Below, piece by piece: positions 12,674 to 55,920 of a DNA stretch of 60,427 nt (position 1 is its first letter; each line of letters begins with the position of its first letter). The notes under the pieces were generated by a model, which saw only the letters and a list, made by a program, of their open reading frames with translations, did not search any database and had not been told where the DNA came from. The position numbers were made by a program, and so were the translations under genes. The stretch comes from Octopus bimaculoides (taxonomy: Eukaryota), in NCBI RefSeq assembly GCF_001194135.2, contig NC_068985.1:42013134-42073560 (forward strand), written 5' to 3'.

Positions 12674-15600
12674 TATATACATATATATACATGTTGGAAC
12701 TCTTTTAAGCAAAATAATATATACATATATATATACATATATATATACATATATATACATATATATATATATATATNNNNNNNNNNNNNNNNNNNNNNNN
12801 NNNNNNNNNNNNNNNNNNNNNNNNNNNNNNNNNNNNNNNNNNNNNNNNNNNNNNNNNNNNNNNNNNNNNNNNNNNNNNNNNNNNNNNNNNNNNNNNNNNN
12901 NNNNNNNNNNNNNNNNNNNNNNNNNNNNNNNNNNNNNNNNNNNNNNNNNNNNNNNNNNNNNNNNNNNNNNNNNNNNNNNNNNNNNNNNNNNNNNNNNNNN
13001 NNNNNNNNNNNNNNNNNNNNNNNNNNNNNNNNNNNNNNNNNNNNNNNNNNNNNNNNNNNNNNNNNNNNNNNNNNNNNNNNNNNNNAATCTCATCAGTATT
13101 CCCGCTCCAGGTGCCGAGCCACAAACCGATGGACTTGTTCTTGTTAACTTTTGCCCTAGCCACTGCCTCGTATCCTTTGATTGCATCCTCTTCACAAGGT
13201 AGCTGAGCTACGTTGGACACGGTGATGGTGAAGTCATCCACATATGCAGAAACAGACTTATCACATCTGATTTCATTGGGGATGCCCCCTCCCCCCAAAA
13301 CTCTCCAACCTCCACAGCAATGGCTCAAGAGTCAGTACATACAGAAGTGGAGACAGGGGACACCCTTGACGAACCGAGCACTTGATCTCAAACAGCTCTG
13401 ACAGGTAATCGTTTATTTGGACTGTGGATTTGATGCAACCATAAATAGCCTTGATCCAACTGCGGAAGTCTGAACCTAGCCCAGCCACCTCAAGGACTGG
13501 TACTGGTGGTCTACCCTATTGGAAGCTTTACTTTGGTCTAAATGGATCAATGCCCCACTTTTACCAGATACTTTACCCACCCTATCTAAGGTGTACCATA
13601 TGAGATGAAGATTGTCCTGGATTGACCTGCCTGGGATGGCACATGTCTGCACCCTCCCTACAAGTTTCTCCACGACACACGTCAAACTTTTTGCTAAAAC
13701 TTTGGCCAAAATCTTTAACTCTACATTAGTTTGTGTAGATGCAGGCCAGCAAGTGTCTGAACAAGTCTGGCATACTACGATAAAATTCATAGGGCAGACC
13801 ATCCAGCCTGGCGACTTGTCTCTGGCGCATTCTGCCAGCACCCCCTTGACCTCCACAGCTGTAATCGGCCCTTCACAACATTCTGCCTTCTGCGCTGAGA
13901 GTCGCGGCCTACTGGCGAGGAAGTCCTTTAGGGATTCCCCACAGTCCAGTGCCCCGCTCATCCCCAACAACCAGGCGAAATGTTGGTGAAAAGCCTTTTG
14001 CATCTCCTCCTGTCCTTTTCTCGTACACCTCTGCTCGTCAATCAAAGACTTTATAGAGGCTTCACTGTCTCTCCAACTTTCCACACAACGTGCCTATCCG
14101 GCAATGTTAATACCTTCTCTACCCACCACATGTAACTTAGCCCTGACTCTACACCCTTCGTGTTTGGCTTTGAGATGACAGAATAACACCGCTCTTGCCG
14201 CTATCACTCTGGATGAAGAGCCAGATTCCATGGCCTCCTCTGATTCCTTAATTAGATTCCCTTCTATTCTAGTCTTCTCTAAACTTAGCTGGTTACTAAA
14301 TCTAAGAGACTCAGAATGAATGGCTCACTTGAGGGCGCACCACCATCTATTATTAATGATGGTACCACATAATGCCCTCTGCACTAACTCCTTAACCCGG
14401 GTATGGAAAGTTTTACAGATCAAAATAGACTTGTTCATCTTCCAGTACCCTGGTCCCTGTCTATGACACTTAACTAGGTGCACCTCATGTCACAAATTTG
14501 TGATCCATGTAAGGGACACAACAAAAGCATGGACAACTAACTGTATTCCTATTTCTCTCTCTGATGAATATCCTATCTAAATAAGATCTGTATGAACTGT
14601 CGTTATTCGTCCACGTCCACTGTGGAACGAGTTGTTCATCCAGTATATATCAGTCTACTAGGTTATAGCTCCCTAGTATCCTTTTAAGGCCAGGACTTCT
14701 CCTTCTATCAATCGAGCCAACACTATCCACTTGTGTGTCAAGAATAGTGTTAAAGTCTCCTGCTAAAACTAGAGTTTTTGACATCACCAGAAAGCTCTCC
14801 AGGTCTCGCAAAAAACCCACTTGTCTACACTCACTAGGAGCGTAAACAGCTACCAACCTGGAGGACTGCTTACTTGTGTGTGTCACATCTAGGATGACCA
14901 GCCTACTTTCTGGGTCCAGAAAGACTGTACTTACCTGTACGTTCAAGTTTTTCTGAACAAGACCCCCACACCCTGCCTCCCCATTGACTAGGAGAAATAA
15001 ATTTCTCATAGCCATTTAGAAGAGGCGAGAACACCTGTGGCCCATTCAGCTTGGACTCAGTCACCACACATACATTAATTTCTAGTGACCTGAGGTCATC
15101 CAGGAAACAAGTTTGCTTCCATTTCGGCCCCATAGCCTAGTGGTTATATAATAAGTACCAAGTTTTAAGAAAAAGGTATAGGGTTGATTTGTTCAACTAA
15201 AACCCTTCAAGGCAGTGGCCCAACACTTTGGTTAACCTAGAATTGTGTAGTGATGTTGCATACACTTAGCAGGCTCCAACCAACTCCAGCTTGGACTGCA
15301 TCCCTGTGCAGGATGATGCTGACTCTGAGGTTATAGTGCTCATCATTACTAGAGTGGGGTATTGCCATGTGACCTATACTTAGTCATCCTTCACCTGTCT
15401 GATTCATTTCACTGACACCCATGGTGTCATCTAACTTAAATCTTGGTCCATCTGTCCACCATGAAAATGTATGTGGACATTGCAAGTGTTTACACTTGTG
15501 TTATTTTTGGCATTAAAGACACAGCTGATTGGTGTTCAACTTCCATGCAGCTTTGACCTGGTTTCATCCAAGGATGAACCTTCTTCTCTTTGCTTAACTA

Positions 15601-18167
15601 GTCCACAATAGCTACTTTTTGTAATTTCTGTAGTGATAAGTTGGTTTTACAAGGGTAGGTGTAAATAGTTTATGCCAAATTTTGTTCTCATAGTTTAGGT
15701 CACATTCTGTTATTTCTGATTAAATAATGTCTAATTAAGATATGTCTGGTTGAATTATATTTCAGCACACACTATCTTATTGGATTATATTTCATTAGAT
15801 ATCTCACTAAATTAGGTCTAATTAGCTCATATCACTCTAAGTTTTATTTTGTTCTCATTATGTTTTGTTTCTCATTATTTTTTGTGATTATTATTACGTT
15901 TTGATTTTTAATTTCCATGATAAAAATAATAAAGTCGATAAAAAAAAAAAACCCCATAAAACAATGATATAAAGAAGCAATTGGTAATGTTGATTTATTT
16001 ATTTCAGGAACAGCTTGGCTAGGAGAAAACATCACTCTTCGTATTTCAGATATTCCAAATATGAAAAGACCTGTTGTTTGGCAAAGCAAAAATTATAAAT
16101 ATGAATGTGATAGGACATGTGCTAATGGGGATCATATAGTTACTCAGGATGGTAATGTTTCAACACTTACAATCAAAAATATATCTTGGGAATTTTCAAA
16201 GTGGTCTTTTATGGATGATAATATAAGAGGTGCACTCCTTGAACTGGACATAAAGGGTAAGGAAATTATTTCTGTTGATAATAATAATCATGGAGCAAGT
16301 ATTTTATAATATCAAAGCAAAATCAAAGTTTCTAACTTATCTATTTCAAGGTTTTCTTCTGTATAACTGATTTTATTCCCTCATAATATGAAGTCCAGCT
16401 GAAAAGTTCATAAGCTAACCAAGATACTCTCATGGAACATGACCAAATGATATTTTTCAGCATAGCCCCCTTGCAGGCCACACATTTCTTCCATTAGTGT
16501 TGCAGTGCTTGAATCCCATTGGTGAAGAAGCTTTTAACCAATTGGTAAAAAAGTCATCAATAGTAGATATGACATCATCGTCACTGCAATATTGGCTCCC
16601 AGCCAAGTGGTTTTCATGTTGAGGAACAGATAATTAGTCACATGAAGTCAAATAAAGGAGAACAGGGAAGCTGATCAACCAGTTCAAAGCCAAATACACT
16701 CACAGCAGCCATTAAAACCAAAGACTTGTGTGCTGGAGCATTGTCTTGATGAAACAAGACCCTTTCATCAGTTTTCCTGGGTGTTAGGTCTTGATAGCAT
16801 TTTGTAACTACCTCAGCAAGTTGGCATAATACTTTCCATTGACTACTGTTCTGGTGGTTAAGTTCTGTAACATATCCTGTGGTGGCAACAGTTTAGTTTT
16901 GTTGCCACTTTTTTTAATGAGGTTTCTAAACTTAAATAGTTGTTCCTTTGGCACCTCCAATTCACAAAAATTACCACCAACAGCAGCAGAGAAACTAGGT
17001 TTTTTCCTTTTCTTCCTGGTTACCAACTTGGTTACTTTCTTTCATTACCGGGAAATCCTCGTTTGAGAACAGAAATTCAACATTCGAAAGCAAATTTGAT
17101 TCCATTTTTACAAATGACCTCCAAACTCTACAAGAAAAAGCATAAATATTTTTGTCAAAAATGACAAAAATCAATTTTTACCTTGCAATGGGTACCAAAC
17201 CGTCCAAGTGTAGCTCTTTTGATGCCTTTTGTATCCCCCGTAACTGAAATCATCACCTTCCCTGCAGATGAAGCAACCTTGGCCTTCTTTGGTGCAGGCT
17301 AGGAGGGAGTGTTTCCACTGCATGGTTTATCCCTTTGTCTCTGGCTCAAAATGTTGACAATCATCCTGGGTTGGGAGATTTTAAAGGAAACCAGCTGGAT
17401 CGGCCTTGAACAATGTCAGGTTTTCCTGTGATGTAATCAGCATGGTGCATTTTTGATCAGGTGTCAGAAGATGTGGCACCCACCAAGCAGAAACATTCAT
17501 CATACCAAGTTCATAGTGCAGAATATTCTGAACCCTCTCACAGGATATGGCAATAACAATGGCTATTTGATTTATACTCAATTGCCTGTCATCCATCACG
17601 ATGAAGTGAACATGATCAATGTTTTCCTTGCTGGTGGCGGTTGCAGGGCTTCCAGACATTGGGTTGTCTTCAAAACTCTCCCTTTCCCTCCTAAGTTCAG
17701 TTGCCCTGTTCTTTTTTGTACTGTTGATAAAGTTGGAGTATCATCCCCTAATGTAGCAACCATGTCAGCATGAATGCTCTTGTGGGCTAAACCCTTCTTG
17801 ATAACACCATGATGCCAAATTCTGTCCATTTTCAAGAGAAGTTGCTACTGGTGACTCATGCCCTTGAATTTGCCCTCCATATAACCTGCAGTTTTTCTTT
17901 CAGAATTTTATGTGACTTAAAGGCTTTGAGATTTCTGAATGATAACTATGGTGCACAGTATGAAGGTTAACCTATCCTTCATGAGTTTGTGGCAGGCATC
18001 CTCTTCTCCTCTGCCATTATATAAGTCTTCCTTGGCATCTTCTTCTCAAAAAAAGTCCTGTTTCATCACAGTTAAAGACCTGCTTGGGGATATATCCTTC
18101 AGCTGCTTATAATTCCGGCAAAAGTGCCTTCACATTTGCGTTCGTTGCCTTGTAAGTCAAGGTACCA

Positions 18168-18211
<44 letters not shown>

Positions 18212-21200
18212 GCATACATATATATATACATACATACATATATATATANNNNNNNNNNNNNNNNNNNNNNNNNNNNNNNNNNNNNNNNNNNNNNNNNNNN
18301 NNNNNNNNNNNNNNNNNNNNNNNNNNNNNNNNNNNNNNNNNNNNNNNNNNNNNNNNNNNNNNNNNNNNNNNNNNNNNNNNNNNNNNNNNNNNNNNNNNNN
18401 NNNNNNNNNNNNNNNNNNNNNNNNNNNNNNNNNNNNNNNNNNNNNNNNNNNNNNCCGATCAACGGAACAGCCTGCTCGTGAAATTAACGTGCAAGTGGCT
18501 GAGCACTCCACAGACACGTATACCCTTAACGTAGTTCTCGGGGATATTCAGCGTGACAAGGCTGACGCTTTGAATTACAGGCACAACAGAAACAGGAAGT
18601 AAGAGCGAGGGAAAGTTGTGGTGAAAGAGTACAGTAGTGTTCACCACCATTCCCTGCCGGAGTCATGTGGAGCTTTAGGTGTTTTCGCTCAATAAACACT
18701 AACAACGCCCGGTCTGGGAATCGAAACCGCGATCCTCTGACGGCGAGTCCTCTGCCCTAACCACTAGGCCATTGCGCCTCCACACACATACATACATATG
18801 ATCATACATACATACACACACACACATACATACATATGATCATACATACATACACACACACATACATGCACAGGATACGTCGGCTTTTTGAAGTAATTTT
18901 TTATGAATTGAGAAGAAGGTGCAAAGCTTATCAAAGAAAAACTGCCTTTGGTCTCTAAGTCAAAAGACAAATGTTCTACTACATTATGAAGAAGAATTTA
19001 TAAGTGTGAGATGGTTGCCTATACTCTCATATAATCATATTTGTGACATATTTTACAGTGAAACCAAAGATTCGGATCAACGTAATAAAAGAATGTGTAT
19101 ACAACGTAACAGCACAATGTTCTTTACCTGTGACATTAATACAATGTTTCATTGGAAAGGTAAGTAAACAGAATTCTTTTTAACTGTGTTTATCTTTCTA
19201 CCATTAACCAACTAAACTTTGGGGTAAGGAGTGGAATATTTATATTAGACAAACAATTTGGAACAAGCATAATTATGTGCCTTGGTCAGGAGCACAACAC
19301 AAGGACTTCAGTAAGATTTGAACTTATGGACTATGTGGTCACTTGTCTAGCTACTACTTTACTACACAATCATTGTTTTTGATTCTGGATTCCTTTTTAA
19401 CTATTGTAATCATATTGGATTGCAGTCTTTGGGTGTAATAACATCTATAATTCCATCTGTATTTCTCTAGGACTTGAGTCTTATATAAGTTTTATAATTG
19501 TTTATTTCTACTCCAGTATTTCTTGATCCTTAAAAGGAAACAGTTTTAGTGATGCAGTCTTGGTTATCTGGTATTTGTTCAAACTACAATGAGAGGTTCT
19601 AAGAGACAGTATAACCTAAAATTCATAGAGAATGTGCAAAAGCTTAATGGCGTGTTGTTTAGGAATGGTAAGGATGTTGTGTGTGTTTCCTTGATTTGTG
19701 TCTCAGTATAATGGAATGAAACTAAAATGTCAAACTCAAATTTCAGAATATCTCCAAGTCCTTTTAGTTAATGAAAGATATATTTTGACAAAGTCAACAA
19801 ATTTTGTGTGATGAAACTTAGTTGCAGAAGATGGTTTCTGGAATAAAAGTGTTGTTTATTTAGAACTGTGTTCAATGCTTGTTCTATCAACTTCTCTTAT
19901 ACTATATCAGCAAAGAACTTATTCATAACATCAAGTAAGTCATCCATGTAGGTCTTTCATGTACCATAGTTAGTTTTGGTTACTTGTTAGAGTATCCTAA
20001 TTATATTGTATCAAATAATTATGTTAATAAGTCAAGAACTTTAATTAGAAATGAATTGAGAAATGAATGTGATAAAATAAAAGTGTACTTCCTGATGCTT
20101 TTTAATTATCTTCTCTCTCTTTCTCTCGAACCATCTCTCTCTCTTGCTTTTCTTTTTTTCTTTCAGAATCCTGCTGCAACCCAAAGAAATAAATGTTCTG
20201 ATAAAAAAACTATCACCAACAGTGCTAGATTAAATCTTGGTCCTTCAGTTTCTGGACAAGTGAAATGTATTTTCACTATAGATGATATATTCGAGGAGAA
20301 ACAATTTTTTAACTTTACATGTAAGGGAGTATTTGCATAATGTTTATAAATTATATTGAAAATTGTTTTTAATTTTTCTATGCTTAAATATATTGACTAT
20401 AAACTTTTTGTATCATTCCCAACTTCCTTAAAATATTTTTTGTGTGTTATTTCATAATTAATATATTTATTGTAAATTGGATGATCCTGATATTAGTATC
20501 AATGCCATTTTGAAATATGTTCATTTATGTAGAGTTGGATATAGAATCTCTGAAGTCAGCTACTCATGATGTGCTTTTATGTCTACTGCTATAATCTTTG
20601 ATAATCTTCCTTAATAGCATCATATTAAAATGATCTGAGATCTCATTTAAATACTTGTAAGGATCTGTTACTCTCTAAAAATTAAGGGTCTATTACTCTC
20701 GGTATATTAATGAGCTGTTAATTCTCAAATATTAAGGATTTATTACTCTTCAAACACCAAATATATATTACTCTCAAAATATCATGGAACACTGTTACTC
20801 TGTAAATATTAAAGATCTACTAGTCTCTTTATATTGGTTTCAAATTTTGGCTCGAGGCCAGTAATTTTTGGGCAGGGGTGAATCAATTACATCGAGCCCA
20901 GTACTCAACTGGTCCTTATTTTGCCAACCCTGAGAGGATGAAAGGCAAAGTTGACCATAGTAGCATTTGAACTCAATATGTAAAGACAGACGAAATGCTG
21001 CTAAGCATTTTTCCTGGCATGCTAACGATTCTGCCAGCTCACCACCTTTGCTACTCTCTTAATATTATGAAGACTAGTTTCTAAATACTTAAGTGATGAT
21101 AAACTCTATATATTAAAGTTACATCAATTCCAAAATTATTTGTCATTTCCAAGCATGAAAAGCTGAGATAATATTTTTGTTATTTATTGGATCTGGTGTT

Positions 21201-22479
21201 AGGAGATAAGAAAAAAGATGTTTGCCATCTTTTTGTGCACATAGGACAGCTATATACATCATGGTCATTGAAACGTATGTAGTAAGTACAAGTATCACTT
21301 CTACTATTTTAATTCCTGTCATATCTAAATATGACAGGAATTAAAATAGTAGAAGTGATATTTGTACCATTGGCAATTAAACATGGAATCTAGAGCAGAT
21401 TTATGTGTTTCCATGACCAGGTGTGAATAGAAACTTTGAATGGTAGTAGAAGTAATTACTATGCTCCATCTACAATAAGAAAGTTAACTGGCTTAAATAT
21501 CATTTAGTTCTCTATAATATACTTTTAGAGCCAGCAAAGAAGCACCAGTGTAATTACTGAGCCTATTAGGAATACATCCTATCACATCTTGACATCTTAA
21601 AAATGAAAGGTGATATTAGATAATATTATCCTAGATATACACTCTTCTATTATGGTAGTTTACTAGTTGTATATAGCAGCCACTTCCTATAGACCTCTAT
21701 CACATAGGTACCATAACCTTCTACATCCCTCTATTTCGTTTGCTGTCTATCAAGTGTAGTCTACCATAGCTAACCATGATGCTTTTCACTACCCTCTACT
21801 CATTAACCATGTACCCACTGTAGTCTACCATAATCCATACTGCAAACCTCTACCTTGAAACCACCTACTGACTCTACTCTATCATTGCTCCTTACCATGA
21901 TACTTTTTCACATCCTTCAACCTCATTAGTCTACCTTAGTCATTTCCTTACAGGCCTCTACCACAGGACTTCTAATATCACTACAACAGCACCTGTTCAT
22001 TCTAACTTGTAGTCTAAAAGCTACACTTAAATAAACCATTCATTTTACATCTAAACACTATTCTCAACACATTGCCCAATCATTTCTCCCATAAATTCAA
22101 CAACCTGAAACTCCACATTTCTGTATTTTCCACTCAGTCACTAAACTGAGTCAACATGATTGTATCCAAAGATCCAAATTAATCCATAACTTCATCCCAT
22201 TAACCCTATTCCTGAGTCTAGAAGAAATAAAAATTTTATAAACACTACTTCTCTTCAGACTAAGTAAAGCTCGTTAGGCTAATTGGAACCACTTAAGCTA
22301 CACAAATATACTAATTTTTAATAAATACTAAGTTATGTATTATACTGATTATCTTTGCAGGTGATGCTACACCAAAACCAATAGCTGGTAATGATACTCC
22401 ATCAGGATTTTACATATTCAGATCATGCAAAAGCCTTCTCCTGGGGATCATAATTGCTGACAACTTGTTCAAGAATTAA
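10369..22479 (+). CDS. Gene A: spliced gene for a secreted/GPI-like protein with two Ig-like domains, join(10369-10405,12529-12570,16008-16256,19059-19159,20167-20320,22361-22479), 233 aa
   Basis: All introns are GT-AG with compatible phases (1,1,1,0,1), and the 702-nt join is open to TAA. Protein: [233 protein letters not shown]. Five of the six exons have a clear paralogous exon on the - strand. The Ig and GPI labels are inference. Confidence 0.88.
10860..11480 (-). mobile_element. Penelope-like RT fragment
   Basis: [20 protein letters not shown] and [13 protein letters not shown] motifs. Confidence 0.75.
12529..12570 (+). CDS. Gene A coding exon 2 (42 nt, end of signal peptide)
   Basis: tttccttcttttacag|AT...GATG|GTAATC. 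Phase 1-1 and open, bridging exon 1 to exon 3 in frame. Confidence 0.75.
13086..15135 (-). mobile_element. L1/Tx1-like LINE remnant (APE endonuclease + RT) in gene A intron 2
   Basis: [15 protein letters not shown]; [19 protein letters not shown]; [21 protein letters not shown]; AYVDDFT. Confidence 0.9.
16008..16256 (+). CDS. Gene A coding exon 3 (Ig-like domain 1, phase 1-1)
   Basis: atttatttcag|GA ... AAG G|GTAAGG, 249 nt open. Ig-like strand motifs [20 protein letters not shown]. Paralog at 35622-35873. Confidence 0.9.
16388..17960 (-). mobile_element. Decayed mariner transposon with an unrelated ~350-bp insert (~16860-17200)
   Basis: [50 protein letters not shown] motifs. Confidence 0.85.
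19059..19159 (+). CDS. Gene A coding exon 4 (first half of Ig-like domain 2)
   Basis: ttttacag|TG AAA CCA ... GGA AAG|GTAAGT. 24/33 aa identical to the paralog exon 34836-34936, which has the same length. Confidence 0.92.
20167..20320 (+). CDS. Gene A coding exon 5 (second half of Ig-like domain 2)
   Basis: Long pyrimidine tract, ttcag|AAT ... ACA T|GTAAGG. CSD, TNSA and KC.FT are shared with the paralog exon 32054-32216. Confidence 0.88.
20620..21120. repeat. Degenerate ~24-bp minisatellite (ttactctc.aaatattaaggat) shared, inverted, with gene B intron (~31100-31660)
   Basis: Repeated units flank a SINE in both paralogs. Confidence 0.6.
21293..21360. repeat. Perfect 32-bp palindrome with 4-nt loop in gene A intron 5
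   Basis: tatcacttctactattttaattcctgtcatat-ctaa-atatgacaggaattaaaatagtagaagtgata. Confidence 0.95.
22361..22479 (+). CDS. Gene A last coding exon (linker + hydrophobic GPI-like tail)
   Basis: tctttgcag|GT GAT ... AAT TAA. Ends [14 protein letters not shown], identical to gene B. Confidence 0.88.
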
Positions 22480-23559
22480 AAAGTAGCAGGAAGAATCTAA
22501 TACGCATTGTGAATTTCTTACATATGTGTGTGTATATATACATATATATAGATCAACATCGTCATCATCATTTAATGTCCGTTTTCCATGCTCTGGTTTT
22601 GAATATTTCAAGGGTTTTCTTTTAGAAAGCACACATTGGACTCTGTGTGTAGACTTGTGTATGATGAAACACTGTTTATATTCTTTCCCAGGATGGACTC
22701 AGCTCCAATCATGATGAAAATATTGATTACAATACAATTACTAATGGTGCTTCTAATGTTTGTTTAGGCTTTAGATATAAAGTAGCAAGGAGTATATGTT
22801 CAATTCTTTTCACATAAAAAAGTATGAATGATCTGGTGAAGGATTTAGAACTCTGGTTTCAAAGAAAGACACTTGCCTGAAGAAAACATAACAATAAGTG
22901 AAATTTTGATTTAACAGTTCATTTCTAGGTTAATAGCCCTCTCTTTTGATATGATCACATTTATGGATGTTTTGCTTGTTTATCTGACAGCCATATTATA
23001 AGGAGATGGCTATTTTTTTCTAATTGATTCATCACTACAAACATTAAAAGCAGTTATATTGCATGATAGAAATTTAAAGCTATCTATTCTCAACATGCAT
23101 TCACTACATTTAGCAGACATTATGTTGACATGGAATTCTTTTTTAATGCAATTCAGTTCAATGATCACTATTAGAGAAATCATAAAGTAATTCCTATGTT
23201 AAAAAGCATGTAATAGGGCATTCACTAAACTGTGTTGCTTTCTATGTCTGTTGAAGAATTGTATATAATAGAAGAGAATGGCCAACTAGATCTTCATATA
23301 TTTCTGAAAGGGAAAAAGCACTCAATTTACTCCTTCAGTTGACATGAAAAAGATATTTTAAACATCTTTTTTGCATAAAGTTTGCTTAAATAAAGATAAG
23401 GCCATGGGTAAGGGAAAATTTCAAGGAATTTCAATTTCTCTCAGCAATATTTCTTTTATTAGGGCTGCCAAAATTAAAGAAAGATATTAAAAGGTAAAAC
23501 TTCTAATGAAACACATACAACATTTTAACTAAAAACTTGACACACCTTCAAATAATTTT

Positions 23560-24310
23560 GAGCTAAATAAGTAATTGCAGTCGAAGGCATTTTTTGTCAT
23601 TACTGCCTGGTGTTGTTTTTCAGCAACTGCACTTTTTTCTAGCTGCGAGCTTTATCTTTTTAAGTTCTCACCTAGTTCAAGACACTAATAAAAGTGTCAC
23701 CTCTCAAGGTTCCTGATCAGGGATTATATAGCTCTCTTGCAGACATCTTGAAAACGAAGATAACAAGGGTTACACTTCTATATTTTCAGAGGTTACCAAC
23801 TCCTCACACAGTAGATCTTTCAAGGTCATTCCATATGATGTGAGTCTCACAGTAGAGACATCATTTTGAAATCTGGGTGAAGAGGCTGGATATCTGGATG
23901 CAAACCAGAAGTCATTGTTGGCGATTCAGTCAGTCTACTTTATGTCTATGATGTAAAGCTGGAAAGTGCTGTGACATTGCTCGTAACTGAAGTAGTGACT
24001 CTGAGTCTCATTCTTATAATGTAGTATGTTGAGGATGCAATCTCTGTAGACAGCAATTTTATTGCACATTGTCATCTTGCTATTCTTTCACTCTATTTTT
24101 GTCATACCACCTAGAAATGAGGCTACACTTCTTCTCCCTCTGTTGATCTCAAACTTTAGGTAGATTTGTGAAGATAGAGTCAAGGTATGTAAACTCATAT
24201 ACTATCTTCAGCTCACAGTTGTTGATGGGAATGCTTTGGACCAATATTTTGCTGTAGCTAATTGGTACTGTGTTATGTGCTTAACAAGATTCATTAAGAT
24301 AGACACTTAG
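23560..24310 (-). mobile_element. Highly decayed R2/NeSL-like non-LTR 3' region
   Basis: Fragments IVYE..TNLPK...KCSL, LHPDI and AVAEK resemble the Zn-knuckle/REL region. Many stops. Confidence 0.35.
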
Positions 24311-24399
24311 AAAAATAAAACAGACTGGCAGCAAATTTGTAAAAATATGATGATTCAAACAATATCAACCATATGCCAATAAACATATCATTCCTGCTT

Positions 24400-25200
24400 A
24401 GTTTTTATTAAGACTTGCTGAAAATGAAGGTTTTAGTAATTAAGGAAGCAGACAAGAATCATGTTTGATAAACAGAACAGAAAGTAGGAGATTCATATGG
24501 TGTACTCAGTGTAAACTACAGGTCCACAAGAGGAATATTGTAATTGCGTACAAGCTGACAGAGAAAAAAGATATATGCGGCAGATGTATTAGAGTAGTTT
24601 TCAGTCAGAACACTAATAAAATAAATGCTTTCCTAAGTACAGAAGGGTCCATAAAAGTAGTTGATAACATCTGTTGGCTATATGATTTGATCAGCAGTAA
24701 AAGGGAGTATACTGAAAGAGCAGTCAAAATAAGTACAGGGTGGGAAAAGTTTGGGGATCTTTTATCTCTGTTGAAAACAAAAAAAATTCTCTCTTCAAGT
24801 AAGTTAGATTGTATGATCCTTGTGTACAAAGTACAATGTTGCATGGTAGGGAGACATAGGTACTGAATGGAAAGGTTGTGCAAAGGATGGAGAAAAATGA
24901 AGTGAGCAAGTTCTGTTGGATGTGTCTTGTTCATTTGTGAAAAAGAACAAGGCACAGATGAGTTGAGAAAGAAATTTGGTATAAAAGGAATAAAATGTAG
25001 TATGGAAGGGAGGAGACTACTTTGGTATAGATTTGCAATGTATACGAATGATGATAGTTGAGTAAAGAAGTCCAAACAAGGAAGTTAGTGAAGTAAGACC
25101 AAGAAAGATAGAAAACTGAATTCTAGATACTGAACCTCCAAGAGGAGATGACAAAGGAATACTCTCTTTGAGAGGACCCAGTCAACTTATACAAGCATAC
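24400..25200 (+). mobile_element. RTE-clade LINE 3' fragment, older copy
   Basis: ERAVKISTGWEKFGDLLSLLK, RT C-terminal region similar to 25760-26335. Confidence 0.7.
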
Positions 25201-25654
25201 AAAACACATTATAGTTTAGAACAAACAGTAAAAGGTTGTCATTATAGTACTTGGAGTTTCAAATGTCAGAGCAAAGAGCTACGATACATTCTTGTCAGCT
25301 ATTAATGGCAAGAAACGCTATGAAAAACCGTTGAATAAAAGGGAAGTAACTCTAATAGGTAGAAAAAATATACATGCAACAATATTCTCACAATACATAG
25401 ACATAAAACCTGTGTTTACAACGTCTATATACGTATACACTCAAACATGTATATGCACATATACACTCACACAAGTATATATGTATGTATGTATGTACTC
25501 GTACACACACATATGCACACACACACACACACGTGTGTGTATACAACCTTATCCTCATATACACATAGGTGCTTACATGCATACATGTAACATAATACAT
25601 ATATATTTAGACATTATATATACACAGTGAAACATTCACACTCCCGCATACACA

Positions 25655-26335
<681 letters not shown>

Positions 26336-27289
26336 ACCATAGCCTGTGGCCTATGCCAGTGGTGGGGTAACCAGCCCACTTATGAGTACTCCTCATTCCT
26401 TGGACAATAAACTTTGCTTGCAAAGACCTATTGAGGAAAGTGAAATCAAAATCAAAATTGCTGACGTGGCTGATGACAGTACCATCTGATTGACACTCAT
26501 GCCAGTGGAATGTTAAAAGCACATCAGAGCGTGATCGTTGCCAGGGCCATGGATTGGCTCCCGTGCTGGTGGCATGTAAAAAGCACCATTCAAGCATGAT
26601 CATTGCCAGCATCACCTTACCAGCACATGTGCCAGTGGCATGTGAAAAACAACTTTTGAGTGTGGTCATTGCCAGTGCCGCCAGAATGGCTCCCGTGCAG
26701 GTAGCACGTAAAAAATGCCTTTTGAGTGTGGTCATTGCCAGAACCACCTGACTAGCTCTTATGCTTGTGGCACATAAAAGCACCCACTACACTCTCGGAG
26801 TGGTTGGCATTAGGAAGGGCATCCAGCTGTAGAAACTTTGCCAGATCAGATTGGAGCCTGGTGCAGCCTTCTGGCTCACCCATACTCAGTCAAACCGACT
26901 AACCCATGCCAGCATGGAAAGCAGACGTTAAACGATGACGATGTTGATGATATGATGTACACACACACCCTCCTACCACACACCTACACCTGCATATATA
27001 CAAACAAATGCACATCTATAAAAATGAAGTGGGGTGTGCCTGAAAGTGGCATTTATGCACCGCACAGAGTCTTACATTCATATACATACATATACACATA
27101 CACATATATACACACACACGCACACACATATACATATAATCTATATACATACATATACACACATACACACTCACACAATTAAAAAGGAAAAAAATGAAAA
27201 ATAATATAAAATATATATAAAAAATAAAAAAAATTTAAAATTAATGGAAGTTGAAATATATGGGAAAGCTTGTGCAGGAACATAGTCGA

Positions 27290-28495
27290 ATTGTGGATTC
27301 TAGCCATGATCTTGGGGGACCCAAAACGGTAATAAGTATTTTGTGACATGTGGACATGATCCAAAATGTTCAGTTTTTTAATTCAAACATGTAGCAGAGT
27401 CTAAGGAACTTGTCCAAATGAGCCATATTTCCATATTACAAAGATCACACTTGCCACTTCCATTGGTATAAGGTTTGCACTTGGCTAAGATCTTCCAGTA
27501 AATCTTGTAGCTGACATCTTGTTCTTTTAGAAACCATATTTAACTGCATAATTTGGTAGTTTTTCGTTTATTCCAGTGTCTGAAGCTTAAGATGTAATTG
27601 TTGAATCTTGCTTTGAAATTTCCCTCTGTGAAACCCACATATCTCTTGGATGAAACTGTATTATTAGCATTCATGGAATTTACACTGGCCTCGATCATAC
27701 AGGCTCCATTTATCTCTGCAGGAACAGTCAGCTTCATGTTGTTGTGTTGTATTGTTTTGCATAACAATGCTTTTGAAGTTTGGGGTGGGACTAAAACTAA
27801 TTTTTAGGTTATGCCTATTAAAGAGTTTTCTATATTTGTGATGTATTGGAAAATGTCTATCTATACATGACAAGAAATATTTACCTATATTAAAGATCAC
27901 TTTCGGGGGAGTAAGGGGGTGTGAACCATATAATTTTCCTGTATCTATGCTTTCTTTCCTTTATATCTGGTGTAAGTTATTTCCTCTTTAAATCCACTAG
28001 CTTTAAGTACATTGTTATATAGTAGAGCAGCATTATTAAATATGTTTATATTGGAGGAGAGGCTAGAAATTCTCTTACTAATATTCTTAACTAAATTCTT
28101 AAACACTAAGTCTATCGTTGGGCTTCCTATAGGGTTTGTAAATCTAGAGATACATCAAGGAAATTAACAACCATCAGGTTGGTATCTATTGTTATACTAA
28201 GATTGAATGTCTTCATAAAATGGAAATATCCTTTCTTAACCGATCTTGCGCTGGTTCATTGGTATTCTTAGTTAAAGCTAGAGCATCATCCCTATAAATA
28301 GCGAAATATACATCAGGAAAAGCTTTTCCTAACATGTCTAGCAGGAATAGTCTAATGAGATCACATATGTCTGCTCCATCATAATGACCCCATGCTCACA
28401 TTGAAAGAACCCTCTGTGTCCGCTGTCTTGACCCACTCTGCATTCTCGCTGCATGGAGGATTAAATTCTTATCTTGTTTACTAATCTCTATAAAA
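27290..28495 (-). mobile_element. 5'-truncated Penelope-like element (RT + GIY-YIG)
   Basis: FNVSMGS, YFAIYRDDAL, IDRHFPIHHKYRKLFNRHNLKISFS, YVGFTEGNFKARFNN. Confidence 0.9.
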
Positions 28496-29640
28496 TCACC
28501 TGTGAATGTGAGAAACATCAGCTGCAAAAATAATTGATAAAATATATAACTTTGTATTTACATGAAATAAATAACGTTTCTGTGACTTAAGTGTTCTCAT
28601 GTTGACCAAATTGTGCTGAAATTATCTTCATGTTGATAACAACAGAAAAGGGGAATTTTGTTTAATATTTTATTTTTCTGGTTCAGAATATCCAAATGAT
28701 GATGCTGACAGATTTTCATAACACTGAATGCTAGGATATTGAATAGATGAAATTATTAAAAAACTAAAATATAAATCTAAACTTGAATTGAATTTCAGTG
28801 AATGACTAAAACTTTGACACCAAATTGATCAAACATTTCAGTTTTTCAATCCTATTCAAGACACAAGTTTAGTTTTAGGAAATTTATTTCTTTTCATTTT
28901 ACTTATGAAAACTTCTCAATTTTGATGATTAGAAGTTTCATATTAAAAAACATGAAAGCAAAGTTTAACTGATTTTTGTTGTCTATGGTTGATGACAGTT
29001 ATTAGTGACGAAAGGCTGGAGCTACTTATAATGACTATCCACTTCAATACCTAGCCTTCTGTCGTTATACTTGGAGCAATTCCCCTTCCTCCTATACACA
29101 TTCAGGAACCTCTTATAATAACATTTCCAAACCTTTTTTTTTTTTTTTTTTCTGTGTGGCAGTACAACAAAATCATGTACTGCTGTTATTTTCTCCAACA
29201 AAATCTTGATTATACTGCTTCACATTCTTGAGCACCTCATAACCCTGATCCTCCCATTGCAGAACATCAGCGAATCTACGTTCAGTTTCCTTCCATGTTA
29301 TGTGAACTTACTACTTTGCTTCTCTTCTGGCTACTTGGTATTGTTCTTAGGTCTAAACAGTTGCCATTTGGATATCAATTTTTTTTTTTTCACCAAAGTA
29401 AAAACTAAAGGCTCCTTTACTTTCTAATCTCATGCCAAAAATGGCTTCATATATGGATGTCTATGTTAACCAGAATTAGACCATTCTGAAAATGTGGAAC
29501 AGTTTACATTAAAGTCAACATTGATAATTCAAGACAGTGAAAATCCACAAAGGAGCTCAATCTCAGAATTTATATTCTCTAGCAACAAAATGAAATATAA
29601 AAGAAATTTGTGATGCATATTAGATTCTTTCTGCTACTTT

Positions 29641-29804
29641 TTAATTCTTGAACAAGTTGTCAGCAATTATGATCCCCAGGAGAAGGATGGTGAATGTTTT
29701 GAAAATGCAACATCCTGATGTACCATCAGGTACTAAAGATGTTTGTGGAGTTGTAAGTTGCTTGCGGTTGTATGTCGCTTGTATGTTGCTTGAAACATTA
29801 TCAC
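29641..29804 (-). CDS. Gene B last coding exon (S/T-rich linker + GPI-like tail)
   Basis: tctctgcag|GT GAT ... AAT TAA. Confidence 0.88.
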
Positions 29805-32800
29805 CTGCAGAGATAATCGACAAAAATATATAACTTTGTGTTTACATAAAATAAATAACATTTCTGTGGCTTAAGTGGTTCCAGTTAGCTTAAGAGGCCT
29901 TACTTAGTCTGAAGCAAAGTACTATTCATAGAATTTTCAGTTCTTCTAGACTTGGGAATAGGATTAATGGGATGAAGTTATAGATTAATTTGGATCTTTG
30001 GATACAATCATATTGATTCAGTTTAGTGACTGAGTGGAAAATACAGAAATGTGGAGTTTCAGGTTGTTGAATTTATGGGAGAAATGATTGGGCAATGTGT
30101 TGAGAATAGTGTTTAGATGTAAAATGAATGGTTTATTTAAGTGTAGCTTTTAGACCACAAGTTAGAAGGAACAGGTGTTGTTGTAGCAGTATTAGAAGTC
30201 TGTGATAGAGGCCTATTAGAAGATGATTATGGTAGACTAATGAGGTTGAAGGATGTGAAAAAGTATTGTGGCAAGGAGCTATGATAGAGTACAGTCAGTA
30301 GATGGTTATGAGGGAGAGGTTTGTTGGAAAGTACTGTAACATGTAGGCTACACTCAAATGGCTACATATATAGATGGCTGTGGAAATGTATTGTGGCATA
30401 AAGCCATTTTAAACTGCAGTCAGTAGATGGATAATGTGGAAGAGGACAATAGTAGAAGATTGTTACACAGATGTGATAGAGGGCTGTAATGTAATGCATA
30501 ACTGTGATAGAGGAAATATATTATCCAAATTGTCTTTCTATATTAAGAAGATTAGATGTGATTTGAAAGAGCTTTCACTGATATTTCTCATAGATTTGGT
30601 GATTATGTAGATATTCAGTTGTTGACTCTAAAGGAATGTAATAGAGAACTGCATAATATTTAAGCCAATTAGCTATCATATTGTAGGTAAAGTATGGTTA
30701 TTATTTCTACTACCATTTAAAATCTCTGTTTACAACTAGTCATGGAAATGCATAAAACTGCTCTACATTTCATATTTAACTGCCAATGATACAAGCATCA
30801 CTTCTACTACTGCAGTCCTTGTCATATCTAAAGCACCTTGCTACATATATTTCAATGATTATAATGTACATAGCTGTACCACGTCCACAAAATTTTTTCC
30901 ATTTTTGTGATGACATACATAAATTATTCCACAGTTGATAATACTTGAGGATAGCTGTGATTGATAGTAGATGGAACCAGGGAAGAATATAACAGAGTAG
31001 GCAGGATACCTAAGGATTTCAGCAATCCATAATAGGGGGCACAGATGATCCTATGAATAACACAAATATATTAGTACAGCTTTCATGCCTGGAAATAACT
31101 ATTTTGAATTGATTTAAACATTAATATTCAGAGAATTCCTTAATATTTAGAGAGTGATGGCTCCTTGATATTTGGAGAATAACTGCATCTTAATATTAGT
31201 TCCAAATTTTGGCACGAGGTCAGCAGTTTTAAGGAAGAGGCTGTCAATTTCATCAACCCCAGTGTTCAACTCGTATTTATTTTAGTGACCCTCAAAAGGA
31301 TGAAAGGCAAAGTCAACCTTGGTGGAATTTGAACCCAGAATGTAAGGACAAATGAAATGCTGCTAAGCATTTCAGTTAACATGCTAACATTTCTGCCAGC
31401 TTGCCACTGAAATAAAAGAGTGTCAGATCATTAAATATTTAGAGAGTAAGAGAACTTTAATGTTTGTAAAATATTAGATTTTTTAATATTTGGTGAATAC
31501 CAAATTTTTCATATTTTTGATGTCAAGGGAGTAAAGGATCTTTAATATTCAGAAAGTAACATTTTCTTAAAATTTAGAGACTAAGAGATTCTTAACATTT
31601 ACATTGTAGCAGCTCCTTAATATTTGAGTAGTATCAATATTTAAAGAGTAAATGTCTTAATGTTTGGAGATTAACAAGTGTCTAAAATTTATAGAAAGTA
31701 ACAGATCCATACAGATATTTTTTACAGTGGGATCTTGGTCCACTTTGATATGTTTTAAGAAAGATTTAACAAAGTATATAGTAACAGACATGATAACACA
31801 TTGTGAGCAGCTGACTTTAGAGGTTCTGTATCCAACCCTAACTAAATGAACATATTTCAAAGATGAGGTGGCATGAATTATAGGGTCATCCAATTTACAG
31901 CATATTAATTATGAAATATCTTTAAAAAAAAAATTAAAGGAAGTTGGGTGTAACCCCCAAAATTAAGAAGTTAATAGTCAATATATGTAGGTAAAAAGAA
32001 TTTTAAAACAATTTTCAATAGAATATATAAAATTTATGAAACTTTTCCTTCACATTTAATTTTTATGGTTCGTTTATCACTGAATAAGCTGTCCATAGTA
32101 AAATTACATTTCAGTTTTCCAGTAACTGGTGGATCGAGAATTAGTTCAGCACTGTTGGTGAACGTTTTTCCATCAGAACAATTTAATATTCTGTTTGAAG
32201 TAAATGTTAAAGGTGCCTGATAAAAAAAAAAAAAAAAAAAAAAAAAGAAAAGAGAGAGAAAAAAAGGATAATTTAAAAGATCAAAGTAGGTGTTGCATTA
32301 TTATTTTATCACGTTTATTTCTCAATTCATTTCTAATTTTTTAAAATTACTTGACTTATTAACATAATTATTTGATACGATATTATTAGGATACTCTGAC
32401 AAGAACTAATTATGGCACATGCAAGGCCTAGATGGATGATTTACTCGAAGTTATGAATAAGTTTTTTGCTAAAATAATATAAGGGAAGGACATAGACATA
32501 GGATAGTAATTACAGCCTGAAGTTGATACAACAGGTATCAAACACACTTCTAAACATACAACATTATTATTCAAGAAACCATCTTCTTCTGCAACTAAGC
32601 ATCATCACACAAAATTTGATGACTTTGTCACAGTACATCCTTTATAACCAAAAGGCCTTTCAGATATTCTGAAATAAGAGTTTGACAATTTAGCTACATT
32701 CCACTATACCAAAATACAAATATGGCATTAATCAAGAAAACATGCACACAACATCCATACCATTCCTAAACAATATATCACTAAGCTTTTGTACATTCTC

Positions 32801-35800
32801 AATGAATTTTAGGTTAAATTATTTCTTAGGATCTTCCAATGTGGTTTGCATAAAAAGACTGCATCACTAAATCTATTTACTTTCCATCATTATCATCATC
32901 ATCATCATCATTATTATTTAATATTCATTTGTCATGTTGGCATGAGCTGGATGGTTCAACAAAATCCAGAAAGTCAGAGGGTTGTGTTGAGCTCCAGTGT
33001 TTACTTTGGCATGGTTTCTACAGTTGGATGCTCTTCCTAATGCCAACCACTTTACAGAGTGTAATGATTGCATTTTTCATGGCACCAGTACAAGTGAGGT
33101 CACCAAGTAACAGGCCAGACAAAGAAATAGTACCCTTGAGTGAGTGGAAGTGTAGTATAAAAGGGAATGTCTTTATGCTATGTGTTGAAAAATGAAAGCA
33201 TGATAGAGGGACTGAAACAGGTGTCTTACTGGAGAGTAGATACATAGATAACCTGCATTATGTAAAAGTAGATGGGTAGATGGGAATAGCTAAAAAGAGA
33301 GATAAGGATGAAGGTGATGAGGTATCAGGGTACTCCCAAGGTACAAGAAGGTGAGTATAAAAGAAAGAAAGAATAGAAGATTGAGAGGAGTGAGTGGGTA
33401 ATTTGAAAGTGTATGAGAGGGGTGTAGCAGATGGTTAGATATGAGGGTAGGGGTGAATGTAGTGAATGATGAACAAAAGTGGAGGCATGGTAAATATGAT
33501 TTTGGTGGGGAAGATAATAAAAAATAAAAGTAACCCAGGAAGGAAGAGGTAGTAAGTGGTAGTGCAGAAAAGCAGCAGAATGATGAAACTGTAGATAAAT
33601 TAAAAAATAAGGAAATGATGGGTGGGGTGAGTTGGTAAAAGAGCAGAAGTGTAGAAAATACTGGAATACTAAAAGTTTACAAAATAAAATAAGATACAAT
33701 AAATAAGATACTAATAAATAAGATACTAATAAATAAGATACAAGTCCTGGAGGACTATATAAAACTATATAAGTAGCCTGACTACAATGGTAATGAGCTA
33801 GGATTCCTATTTAGCTCATTACTATGCCCACTCCACCACAGCTGGAATTTGCTTAGAAAAGCATACTTGCTTGACACATTAGCTCTCTTGAGCACAGTTG
33901 TATTGAAGATTTTATCCTATCATTTGATGTTGAGAATTTGTCATAGGCATGTTTGATATCACTGTAAATATTGAAGTATGATATCAGGAGTGACATTTCC
34001 TTTTCTGGTAATATCATTTTAAATATAAAAGTTATACACTGGAGTAATATATTTATATTTCTAGTACTTTGAAAGCACTGAGAGAACTGAGATATGATGG
34101 ACTGACAACTTTACATTTCTAAGTAATATCATTGTAATTAGAGTATGGTAGAGTCTGAATAACTTGCTGTAGCAGAGAAGGGTATTGAGTTGGCAGAGAG
34201 CTTCTTATCTCTGGAGGTCGATTCGTCAGATTATGTTGATGCAGCTGGAATAATGACCATATCTTGTTGTTCACAGAGTTTCCAGAGAGTGTTGAATTCC
34301 AGTGGGGTGGGGTGGGAAGCGTTGATCTTTGGTGTTGAACAAATGCACCAACTGTGTACCAAAGGAATTTTGATGTACATAATATAGTTGAAAATGTTGC
34401 CACTCGCAATTAATTTCTAATTAGCTAAAATAACCTACATGACAAAGATGAATCTAAAATGGTCATGTGATTTTGTTAATCTAACCAAAATTTCTGATTG
34501 GTTAAAAATAACATGCATGACAACAGTGAAACTAAAATGCTACATGAATGAGAATCCTTGTAAATTTATTAATCTGAAATCAAATCCAAAGCTAAAAGAT
34601 ATCCCGCATCGAAAATAACAACTGTGTAGTTAAGTGGCTGCTAGACTAGTAACCACATAGTCATAAGTTAAAATCTTACTTATTAAAATCCTTGTGTTGT
34701 GATCCTGCAAAGCACGTAAAACTATGTTTGTTTCAGATTGTTTGACTAATATAAAACATTCCACTCCTTACTCCATAGTTGAGTAGCTTGATAATAGAAA
34801 GACGAACACAGATAAAAAGAATTCTGTTTACTTACCTTTCCAATAAAACAGTCTATATGTGTCACAGGTAAAGAACATTGTGCTGTTACATTGTATATAC
34901 AATCTGTTTCATTCATGATCTCAATCTTTGGTTTCACTGTAAAATATGTCACAAATATGATTATGATCTGTGAGTATAAGCAACGTCTTACACTAATAAT
35001 GTCTTCTTCATAATGTGGTAGAACATTTGTCTTTAGATTATGAGACCAAAACTGTGCTTAAAATGATGACTGGAAGGAATCAAGATGTTACAAGCGTGGA
35101 ATATGACAATTTTTTTCTTTTCTTTATATGTATCTTTATATATATTTTTAAATAATAATATTTTCTTCATTAGTTTCAAGGTCTCAAAGAGATACAAAAA
35201 ATATGAAGTTTTCACTTGGAGTTACATAAATAAAATGATGATATTAAGTGTGAAAAATACATTTACAAATTATGAAGAAAGTGATTAAGATACACTGGAA
35301 AGCAGTGGTACTTTCAATTTTTTCCATTGATGCTCTGTTTTGATTCAAATTGTACCAGAAAATGTCTGCCATGTAGCAATTAATTACTAATATTAACAGT
35401 TGACCAATGAAAATATGTCAGAATATTAAAAGAGATGATATAATAGTTAAACTAACTAGTTTATTTGGTTAACTGTTCTACAAGAGATATGAGGTAAAAA
35501 AAAAACCCCAGTTATACAGAAGAAAACCTTGAAATCATTATGTTACAAACTTCGATTTTGCTTTAATGTTATAAAATATTTGCTCCATGCTTATTGTAAT
35601 CAGCAGAAATAATTTCCTCACCATTTATCTGTAAATCAATTACACCAAAGTTAAAGTTAGCATCGAAATATATCCATGTCGAAAACTCCCATGATACATT
35701 CCTGATCCAAAGAGTAGAAATGTTACCAGCATGAGTAATTGCAAAGTTGGTGGCATTACCGCAGGTTGTATCACAATTATATTCATTATTATTGCTTTCC

Positions 35801-51830: not shown

Positions 51831-52089
51831 GTGGAATGCTGACGTCCATATGTGTTATATGTTCATATCTATATGTATGCGTAGGTATACGTATATATGA
51901 ATACGTCGGTATACTTATATATGAATAAGTGAAGGCGCGTGGCTTAGTCGTTAGGGCATTCGGCTCACGATCGTAAGGTCGTGAGTTCAATTCCAGGCGG
52001 CGTATTGTATCCTTGAGCAAGACACTTTATTTCACGTTGCTCCAGTCCACTCAACTGGCAAACATGAGTAGTACCTGTGTTTCAAAGGG

Positions 52090-55000: not shown

Positions 55001-55920
55001 CACAGAGAACCAAGAATGGTACTTGATTATGGTTTGCTACTACTCTAAATTCACATTTGTGAGAAAAATGAAAGACCTGAGAGCCAAAACAATAACTACA
55101 GTGGCTCAAGGACTTCTAGCAGAGCAAGGAATACCAGAGCAGATCATATGTGACAATGGAACCTAGTTCACATCTCAGGAATTCAAAAAGCTAGCCGATG
55201 AGTATGGGTTCAACATTATAACCTCATCTTCACACTATCCCAAAAGTCATGGATTCATAGAAAGACAGGTGCAGACAGTCAAGAGAACACTAGTCAAATG
55301 CCGGGAAACTATGGAAGACCTACACCTGGCACTTCTGTCTCTACGAGCGACACCACTGAGGGGTAACATGAAGTCCCCAGCAGAAATACTGAATGGCAGG
55401 AAATACAAAACCACCCTGCCAACAAAGATCCAACCTCCTATTGACCAGGAAAAGACAAGGGCAAAGCTAGTAGCCACTCAAAAACAAAGACAGAAATATT
55501 ACAACAAACATGCACAATACTTACCTGAGATGCTTGGAGGACAACATGTGCATACTCAAGATCCTATAACCAAAACATGGATCCCAGCACAAGATCATAT
55601 ATCATATAAACTGAATCTGGTAGGTCACTGAGACGAAACAGGGCCCACATCTGCTCAACACCAAAACTATCGAGAATAACATGCGCAACATCTGCAGCAT
55701 CAGTGACAACACCAACAAGAACTACAACACCCACAGCAGATGACGGGACACAGAATCCGTGCTTCCACAGTATCATCACCTCAACGGGCACCGACCACCC
55801 ATCAGCAGTCCAACAATACATCAACATTACGCACATCTCAGACATCAGTGCAGAACACAAGATCCACCAGATGGAGACCGAATATCTTACCATCGATTCA
55901 ATACCGTTAAAGAAAAAAAA
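52090..55920 (+). mobile_element. Ty3/Gypsy internal region (gag, CCHC, protease, RT, RNase H, integrase), multiple stops; no LTRs seen
   Basis: CKACGKSNHWKKMC, KIDTG, WVNSIV, LRICLAPRNLNKAL, TTFNTPFGRHRF, PIAYASKALSPTETRYANIERELLAV, HLGIEKCKLRA, PRRPWQAIGVDLF, CDNGT. Confidence 0.95.

Follow-up and report, generated by a model that had tools for sequence, protein, structure and literature searches.

Interlocus gene conversion as the probable source of an identical 138-bp intron tract in two convergent Octopus bimaculoides paralogs

Two neighboring genes of Octopus bimaculoides, strongly diverged elsewhere, share 138 bp of their last introns without a single difference. This raises the question of how so short a stretch of non-coding DNA came to be identical in both: through exchange between the two copies, through constraint, or through an error of assembly. 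The window analyzed here, i.e., the whole stretch of 60,427 nucleotides, comes from assembly GCA_001194135.2 (chromosome CM046605.1, start at about 42,013,134) and is rich in transposons, including LTR-retrotransposon pol domains, a reverse transcriptase, and a mariner-type transposase. Gene A (LOC106876057) lies on the plus strand, with coding exons at about 10.37 kb and 12.5 kb and at 16008-16260, 19058-19159, 20167-20320, and 22361-22479, the last of these including the stop codon. Gene B (LOC106876065) lies on the minus strand, with exon 1 at about 44.2 kb and further exons at 35907-35623, 34937-34836, about 32219-32049, and 29802-29641; the last of these, which also contains the stop codon, was placed by tblastn and alignment. 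The two genes are thus convergent, tail to tail, with 7.2 kb from stop codon to stop codon.

The paralogs encode a signal peptide, two Ig-like domains, and a hydrophobic tail. A Pfam search with the proteins of genes A and B and of a third paralog, gene C, matched no family. In an AlphaFold model of protein A (mean pLDDT 70), a signal helix is followed by two beta-sandwich domains and a C-terminal helix, and the Foldseek matches of the model are tandem Ig domains, among them antibody light chains, DIP, sDscam, and the Ig1-2 domains of NCAM2, with E values of about 1e-6 to 1e-7. These predictions indicate that the A/B/C family would consist of two-Ig-domain surface proteins. In protein searches, homologs were seen in Octopus species only. 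Between A and B, the four coding exons compared are 65-81% identical in nucleotides and 45-73% in amino acids, with an overall dN/dS of about 0.7. Two of these four exons diverge more than the introns.

For comparison, four related loci totaling about 227 kb were examined: the gene A orthologs of O. vulgaris (L001) and O. sinensis (L002), the gene C ortholog of O. sinensis (L003), and gene C of O. bimaculoides itself (LOC106876058, L004), which is located about 265 kb from gene A. Sequences are referred to below as ObiA, ObiB, and ObiC for O. bimaculoides, OvuA for the O. vulgaris gene A, and OsiA and OsiC for O. sinensis, and A-V denotes the comparison of ObiA with OvuA.

The tract of gene A occupies 22012-22149 on the plus strand, within intron 5, which is bordered upstream by exon 5 (20167-20320) and downstream by the last coding exon (22361-22479). 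Its counterpart lies on the minus strand at 30018-30155, in the last intron of gene B, between the exons at about 32219-32049 and 29802-29641. The sequence-only reading had described the one as the exact reverse complement of the other, and the two indeed agree at 138 of 138 positions, with the first A/B mismatches directly abutting the tract on both sides (22011/30156 and 22150/30017). The copies are inverted and 7.9 kb apart, and their sense strand is rich in C, A, and T and poor in G (5% G). No longer inverted exact match exists within the window, the next in size being 56, 42, and 36 bp. When mismatch positions were shuffled over the intron alignment (21300-22560), none of 50,000 shuffles gave a run of at least 138 (P < 2e-5); within the 92.5%-identical block at 21860-22230, such a run arose in 8 of 200,000 shuffles (P 4e-5). 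Because shuffling almost never yields a run of this length, the identity of the tract is beyond chance. The surroundings that had been described for the tract were also recovered: a near-identical block of about 230 bp corresponds to 21981-22203, with five A-B differences, and the neighboring intron sequence, said to be only roughly 75-80% alike, is 72-82% alike further out as measured by BLAST. The immediate shoulders, at 21860-22011 and 22150-22230, are 87-90% alike.

The history of the tract can be read from its relatives. It is present at the orthologous position in gene A of both O. vulgaris and O. sinensis with 135 of 138 positions identical (97.8%), these two species being identical to one another within the tract and thus counting as one effective outgroup lineage. 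The last intron of gene A is colinear with those of OvuA and OsiA at about 90-92% identity, while that of gene B reaches about 79% identity with OvuA and 72-82% with A. As the A intron is about 90% like OvuA and the B intron only about 79%, the A/B duplication predates the split between O. bimaculoides and O. vulgaris. A homolog of the tract is also found in the last intron of gene C, with 76% identity to A and B and a 22-bp indel. Present at orthologous and paralogous sites and without other copies in the window or the four related loci, the tract is, as far as this distribution tells, ancestral intron sequence and not a transposon. Within the tract, B is 97.8% identical to OvuA, as opposed to 79% in the surrounding intron, and B therefore carries A-type sequence there. 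Polarized by gene C, all three substitutions in the core (the identical 138 bp) are derived in the vulgaris/sinensis lineage, and A and B have no derived state in common. No ortholog of gene B emerged from these comparisons: a protein search with B returned O. bimaculoides proteins only, and no B-like copy turned up in the 10-kb flanks of gene A in either O. vulgaris or O. sinensis, or at the gene C loci.

The core is embedded in a wider A-like patch of about 370 bp, which was delimited by site patterns, pairwise identities, and alignments at 21860-22230 on the plus strand in gene A and, from BLAST and MAFFT of the arms, at 29937-30306 on the minus strand in gene B, where its ends are approximate. 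Each variable site was assigned to the odd one out among ObiA, ObiB, and OvuA. The core (22012-22149, 138 bp) has no A-unique site, no B-unique site, and three Ovu-unique sites; the shoulders (21860-22011 and 22150-22230, 229 bp) have 8 A-unique, 18 B-unique, and 8 Ovu-unique sites. In the shoulders, A-B divergence is 11.4% versus a background of about 22%, and A-V divergence is 7% versus a locus-wide substitution mean of 7.1%. The shoulders evolve at the neutral rate between species. Constraint fails to explain them, because this A-V rate is neutral while A-B divergence is half that of the surroundings. Sequence that is neutral across species and yet close between paralogs therefore fits exchange, with B receiving A-type sequence.

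These observations point to the 138-bp tract as the product of non-allelic (interlocus) gene conversion between old convergent paralogs, a reading to which a probability of about 0.68 is assigned. The exact identity of the copies, the non-random length of the run, the ancestry of the tract as ordinary intron, and the A-type nature of the B copy are shown by the comparisons, and so are the neutral evolution of the shoulders and two other exchanges in the family with states specific to the species. Under the conversion model, an A-type copy of part of the last intron would have been pasted into gene B, probably more than once, such that an older event would have left the roughly 370-bp patch to which the shoulders belong and a later, shorter event the 138-bp core. 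The genes would belong to a small, Octopus-specific two-Ig-domain family whose members repeatedly swap patches of a few hundred bases, and the tract itself would need no function. The pattern by which interlocus conversion is recognized, identity in a tract significantly above that of its flanks, is present here, since the tract matches at 138/138 positions, the shoulders reach about 89%, and the intron reaches 72-82%. The lengths of the core (138 bp), of the patch (about 370 bp), and of two other tracts in the family (56 and 183 bp) are inside the usual range of tens of base pairs to about 1 kb, and published conversion tracts measure a few hundred base pairs, the human mean being 250 bp (bioRxiv 10.1101/135152). 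The earlier proposal of recent gene conversion between the arms is hence best supported in its main part, through the A-type patch in B and the unconstrained shoulders; its word "recent" is unproven for the core.

The two other tracts provide clearer cases of exchange. The first is a block of 56 identical bp that, in gene A, covers the last 14 codons with the stop codon and extends 10 nt into the 3' UTR (22434-22489, plus strand) and matches 29631-29686 of gene B (minus strand) exactly. At eight sites of this tail block, ObiA equals ObiB and both differ from OvuA and OsiA; seven of the eight sit close together and turn ALIIFKN of the tail into ADNLFKN. Four differences would be expected over the block at the A-V rate (P = 0.05) and about 12 at the divergence of the paralogs. 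The hydrophobic version, which resembles the gene C tail, is probably ancestral, and for this reason the D-N-L state may be taken as shared and derived. The block looks more like a transfer from B to A. A tail block moved from B to A and a core moved from A to B would need events in both directions, which counts against the conversion model. The block begins 285 bp downstream of the 138-bp tract. A single conversion spanning both was considered and rejected, as strong divergence and two large indels separate A from B over the intervening 285 bp; outside the tail, the last coding exon of gene A likewise shows strong divergence from B, with two large indels.

The second case involves genes A and C. 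In the Ig-domain exon of gene A, 183 bp (16061-16243, plus strand) match the gene C locus (L004, 21181-21363) exactly, and the identity is followed by one mismatch and then by about 35 further identical bases. In a six-sequence alignment, OvuA, OsiA, and OsiC all depart from the 183-bp sequence common to ObiA and ObiC; upstream of it, ObiC groups with OsiC and ObiA with OvuA. Judged from this alignment, the stretch is an independent conversion tract in the same family, and the tail block and the Ig exon together demonstrate post-speciation exchange in the O. bimaculoides lineage. Similar mosaics extend along the genes: in intron 2 and around exon 4, the nearest relative of B is C (about 91%; ObiC-OsiC 93%); over part of intron 4, A is nearest to C (92-95%); and in the last intron and the 3' flank, B comes nearest to A. 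The sequence-only reading had held that homogenization specific to one species would indicate conversion and that conservation across species would indicate constraint. Homogenization specific to O. bimaculoides is what the tail block and the A/C Ig exon display. The core gives a divided answer, with 135 of 138 positions conserved and no derived state common to A and B, and weak constraint may still act on it.

Whether the core was exchanged separately from its shoulders is a question of rates and genealogies. Total tree length is about 7-fold lower in the core (3/138) than in the shoulders (34/229). If the core had evolved along the same genealogy as the shoulders, its three changes would all have landed on the Ovu branch with a probability of 0.235 cubed, or 0.013; this figure involves three substitutions only. 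A Fisher test of A-B versus A-V differences in core versus shoulders gave p = 0.07 and, with three core substitutions, is a weak test. Taken together, the data are read most simply as a second conversion: the core would be a separate and later event that ran from A to B, with the gene B copy as the likely acceptor. As the core has no derived state shared by A and B, its post-speciation date and its separateness are tentative.

The alternative that survives best, although it is unlikely, sees in the core a constrained intronic cis-element of A/B-type genes, e.g., an unstructured C/A/U-rich platform for splicing regulators that govern use of the last exon. The element would have stayed unchanged since an old exchange or since the duplication, with no need for a recent conversion. 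The low tree length of the core is what this account would predict. The same is true of its conservation between species, with an A-V identity of 97.8% versus a locus mean of 92.9%, or three differences versus 9.6 in the mean 138-bp window; only 4.8% of the 138-bp windows in the locus match or exceed it. The position of the tract, 210-350 nt upstream of the last acceptor, also counts in favor of this account, as does the gene C homolog, which ends about 45 nt upstream of the acceptor of its last exon. However, conservation is not family-wide: the gene C homolog evolves at the neutral level (93.8% between ObiC and OsiC), in addition to being only 76% identical to A and B and carrying the 22-bp indel. 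About 15 separate non-coding stretches of the locus are equally conserved and show no similarity between A and B. Constraint also leaves unexplained why all three changes belong to a single branch amounting to roughly a quarter of the tree (p = 0.013), and it does not account for the shoulders; in addition, no structure was found in the tract. Finally, the edges of the two signals do not coincide. A-B identity ends abruptly, with mismatches at 22011, 22150, and 22155, while the stretch of low A-V divergence continues to about 22219. Under a purely neutral history, the place of the core among the 4.8% most conserved A-V windows is a 1-in-20 coincidence. An attempt to align the roughly 210 bp that follow the tract in A and B as a decayed start of the gene C last exon was dropped, since the alignment (43-48%) was at chance level.

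Function and exchange could also be combined. The core might be an A/B-specific intronic platform for last-exon usage that was maintained by selection together with conversion. Alternatively, it might form a 138-bp perfect double-stranded RNA stem in an A/B read-through transcript and thereby become a candidate substrate for ADAR or RNAi. Such a stem is conceivable because the copies are inverted in convergent genes 7.9 kb apart, and the octopus is an animal known for extensive RNA editing. A functional core of either kind is regarded as quite improbable.

The exact identity could, in part, be an artefact of assembly, i.e., a short-read assembler or gap closer may have used one consensus for two very similar copies. 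The assembly GCA_001194135.2 does have N gaps in the window, and the other O. bimaculoides locus compared (L005) is identical to the window because it stems from the same assembly. Nevertheless, both copies lie in one gap-free stretch of 18 kb (18455-36500) with unique, diverged flanks, and the A copy with both of its flank joins is colinear with the assemblies of two other species at about 91%. A mis-join is excluded by the gap-free stretch and by this colinearity. Smoothing of a consensus can erase a few differences; it cannot lift a match of about 80-89% to 100%. Comparable identical patches, moreover, exist between loci 265 kb apart. An assembly origin is for these reasons highly improbable.

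A structured RNA, either an intronic non-coding RNA such as a snoRNA or miRNA or a hairpin that controls splicing, is barely credible. Nothing beyond the conservation of the tract favors it, and the suggestion of the sequence-only reading that an RNA structure might control splicing of the last exon found no support in folding. The 138 nt of the sense strand reach a minimum free energy of -4 kcal/mol (z = +0.16). Antisense folding gave z = 0.0 and a 351-nt context z = -0.8 and +0.08, and a sense strand of 5% G offers little scope for self-pairing. The tract has no Rfam match. At the gathering score, no Rfam family matched anywhere in the window, and a search of the 600 bp around the tract with E values up to 10 gave chance-level matches only, with E of 5 or more. 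Practically negligible is the idea that a young high-copy repeat or transposon fragment was inserted independently into both introns, for although the window is transposon-rich, the tract is colinear with its flanks at the orthologous sites in O. vulgaris and O. sinensis and in paralog C, A-B similarity fades gradually into the flanks without insertion-like boundaries, self-BLAST of the window gave no extra copy, and the roughly 227 kb of the four loci match only at orthologous or paralogous last-intron sites.

Several known systems help to place the locus. The arms of human Y-chromosome palindromes are more than 99.9% identical over their whole length, owing to arm-to-arm conversion. The octopus genes resemble them as inverted duplicates on one chromosome whose exchanges of sequence proceed without crossovers, events that would invert the spacer. 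Unlike in the palindromes, only small patches are homogenized here, and the arms are otherwise 20-30% diverged. MHC class I and similar immune-type families combine homogenization of introns with diversification of exons. Here, too, non-coding segments are closer than the neighboring exons for the Ig domains and the tail, whose evolution is fast (dN/dS of about 0.7). In contrast to MHC class I, about 370 bp of one intron are homogenized, and an immune role or diversifying selection has no support in the octopus family.

The third of these systems is non-allelic conversion in duplicated genes, e.g., human duplicates, in which identical patches of a few hundred base pairs stand in diverged sequence (bioRxiv 10.1101/135152; PMC3924818). 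Genealogies that form a mosaic along genes, and paralogs of one species with states that their orthologs lack (here, the tail block and the Ig exon), are further features in common. The octopus case departs from the surveyed ones in its background identity of only about 78-80% and in a core without shared derived sites. It differs also in arrangement, as donor and acceptor are convergent and 7.9 kb apart, and the A-C exchange joins loci about 265 kb apart. Non-allelic conversion slows as copies diverge (bioRxiv 10.1101/135152), and an A-B background identity of about 78-80% is low for initiating it.

Conversion is an ordinary process in clustered gene families, and the tract is a further instance of this well-known process, in which specialists in molecular evolution will find nothing surprising. 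Its value lies in being a clean, small example of interlocus gene conversion in cephalopod gene clusters. For work on the family, the consequence is that gene trees are mosaic and misleading unless they are analyzed segment by segment. The less hydrophobic, derived tail (ADNLFKN versus ALIIFKN) of two O. bimaculoides paralogs could alter the membrane anchoring of both proteins. In addition, short perfect inverted repeats of this kind might mediate inversion of the 7.9-kb spacer, on which both last exons lie.

Exchange between the paralogs has also involved gene C (LOC106876058), a third paralog that lies ~265 kb from gene A on the same chromosome of O. bimaculoides. The Ig-domain exon of gene A (window 16061-16243, forward strand) is identical over 183 bp to positions 21181-21363 of the O. 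bimaculoides gene C locus (L004), and the orthologs of both genes in O. vulgaris and O. sinensis differ from this sequence. The shared stretch is clearly a post-speciation conversion tract, and it lies within a coding exon. Part of gene A intron 4 (window 19398-19894, forward strand) likewise finds gene C matches, at 33080-33982 of L004 and at 65603-65943 of the O. sinensis gene C locus (L003). Here gene A is 92-95% identical to gene C, whether the gene C copy is taken from O. bimaculoides or from O. sinensis; this equals the similarity between the orthologs and suggests a further, older A-C exchange.

The distance between genes A and C is ~86 Mb in O. sinensis, where both lie on one chromosome (CM016863.1; gene A locus, L002, at 47.0 Mb and gene C locus, L003, at 133.3 Mb), as against ~265 kb in O. 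bimaculoides. The contrast stems from a large rearrangement or else from a difference in scaffolding.

Genes A and B also share an identical 56-bp block (window 22434-22489, forward strand; 29631-29686, reverse strand) that covers the final 14 codons with the stop codon and runs into the beginning of the 3' UTR. In O. bimaculoides the two paralogs have the tail ADNLFKN in common, and O. vulgaris and O. sinensis carry ALIIFKN. ADNLFKN is the less hydrophobic of the two and probably the derived one; with this tail, the A and B proteins might be less firmly anchored to the membrane or by GPI.

Just past the gene A stop codon, O. vulgaris and O. sinensis possess ~5.5 kb that is missing from O. bimaculoides gene A (39400-44969 of the O. 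vulgaris locus, L001, versus window 22553-22590). Because part of this segment resembles the 3' flank of gene B (L001 41341-41713 versus window 29211-29585; 75% identity), the ancestral duplication reached past the stop codon, and O. bimaculoides gene A subsequently lost the segment.

The Ig-domain exon of gene B (window 35623-35907, reverse strand) has an open frame, is 46% identical to its gene A counterpart and is apparently intact. It is skipped in every listed B isoform (P0013, P0014, P0025), and the B proteins are found solely in an older annotation source (eukprot); gene B may be in partial decay, or its annotation may be wrong. At 1.2 kb downstream of the true last exon of B there is an 85-bp relic copy (window 28512-28597, reverse strand; ~87% identity) of the end of the last B intron, with its acceptor site and the opening bases of the exon that follows.

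None of the five assembly gaps in the window (runs of N at 12777-13085, 18249-18454, 36501-37111, 48663-49007 and 58640-59258) falls within 3.5 kb of either copy of the 138-bp tract shared by genes A and B. The window is transposon-rich: it contains the pol of an LTR retrotransposon, bearing RNase H and integrase domains (52000-55650, forward strand), a mariner-type transposase fragment (59960-60427, forward strand) and, in gene A intron 2, an ORF with a weak, below-threshold match to the reverse transcriptase RVT_1 (13200-15140, reverse strand; E 4e-4). Microsatellites of the (TA)n and (CA)n types are also common.
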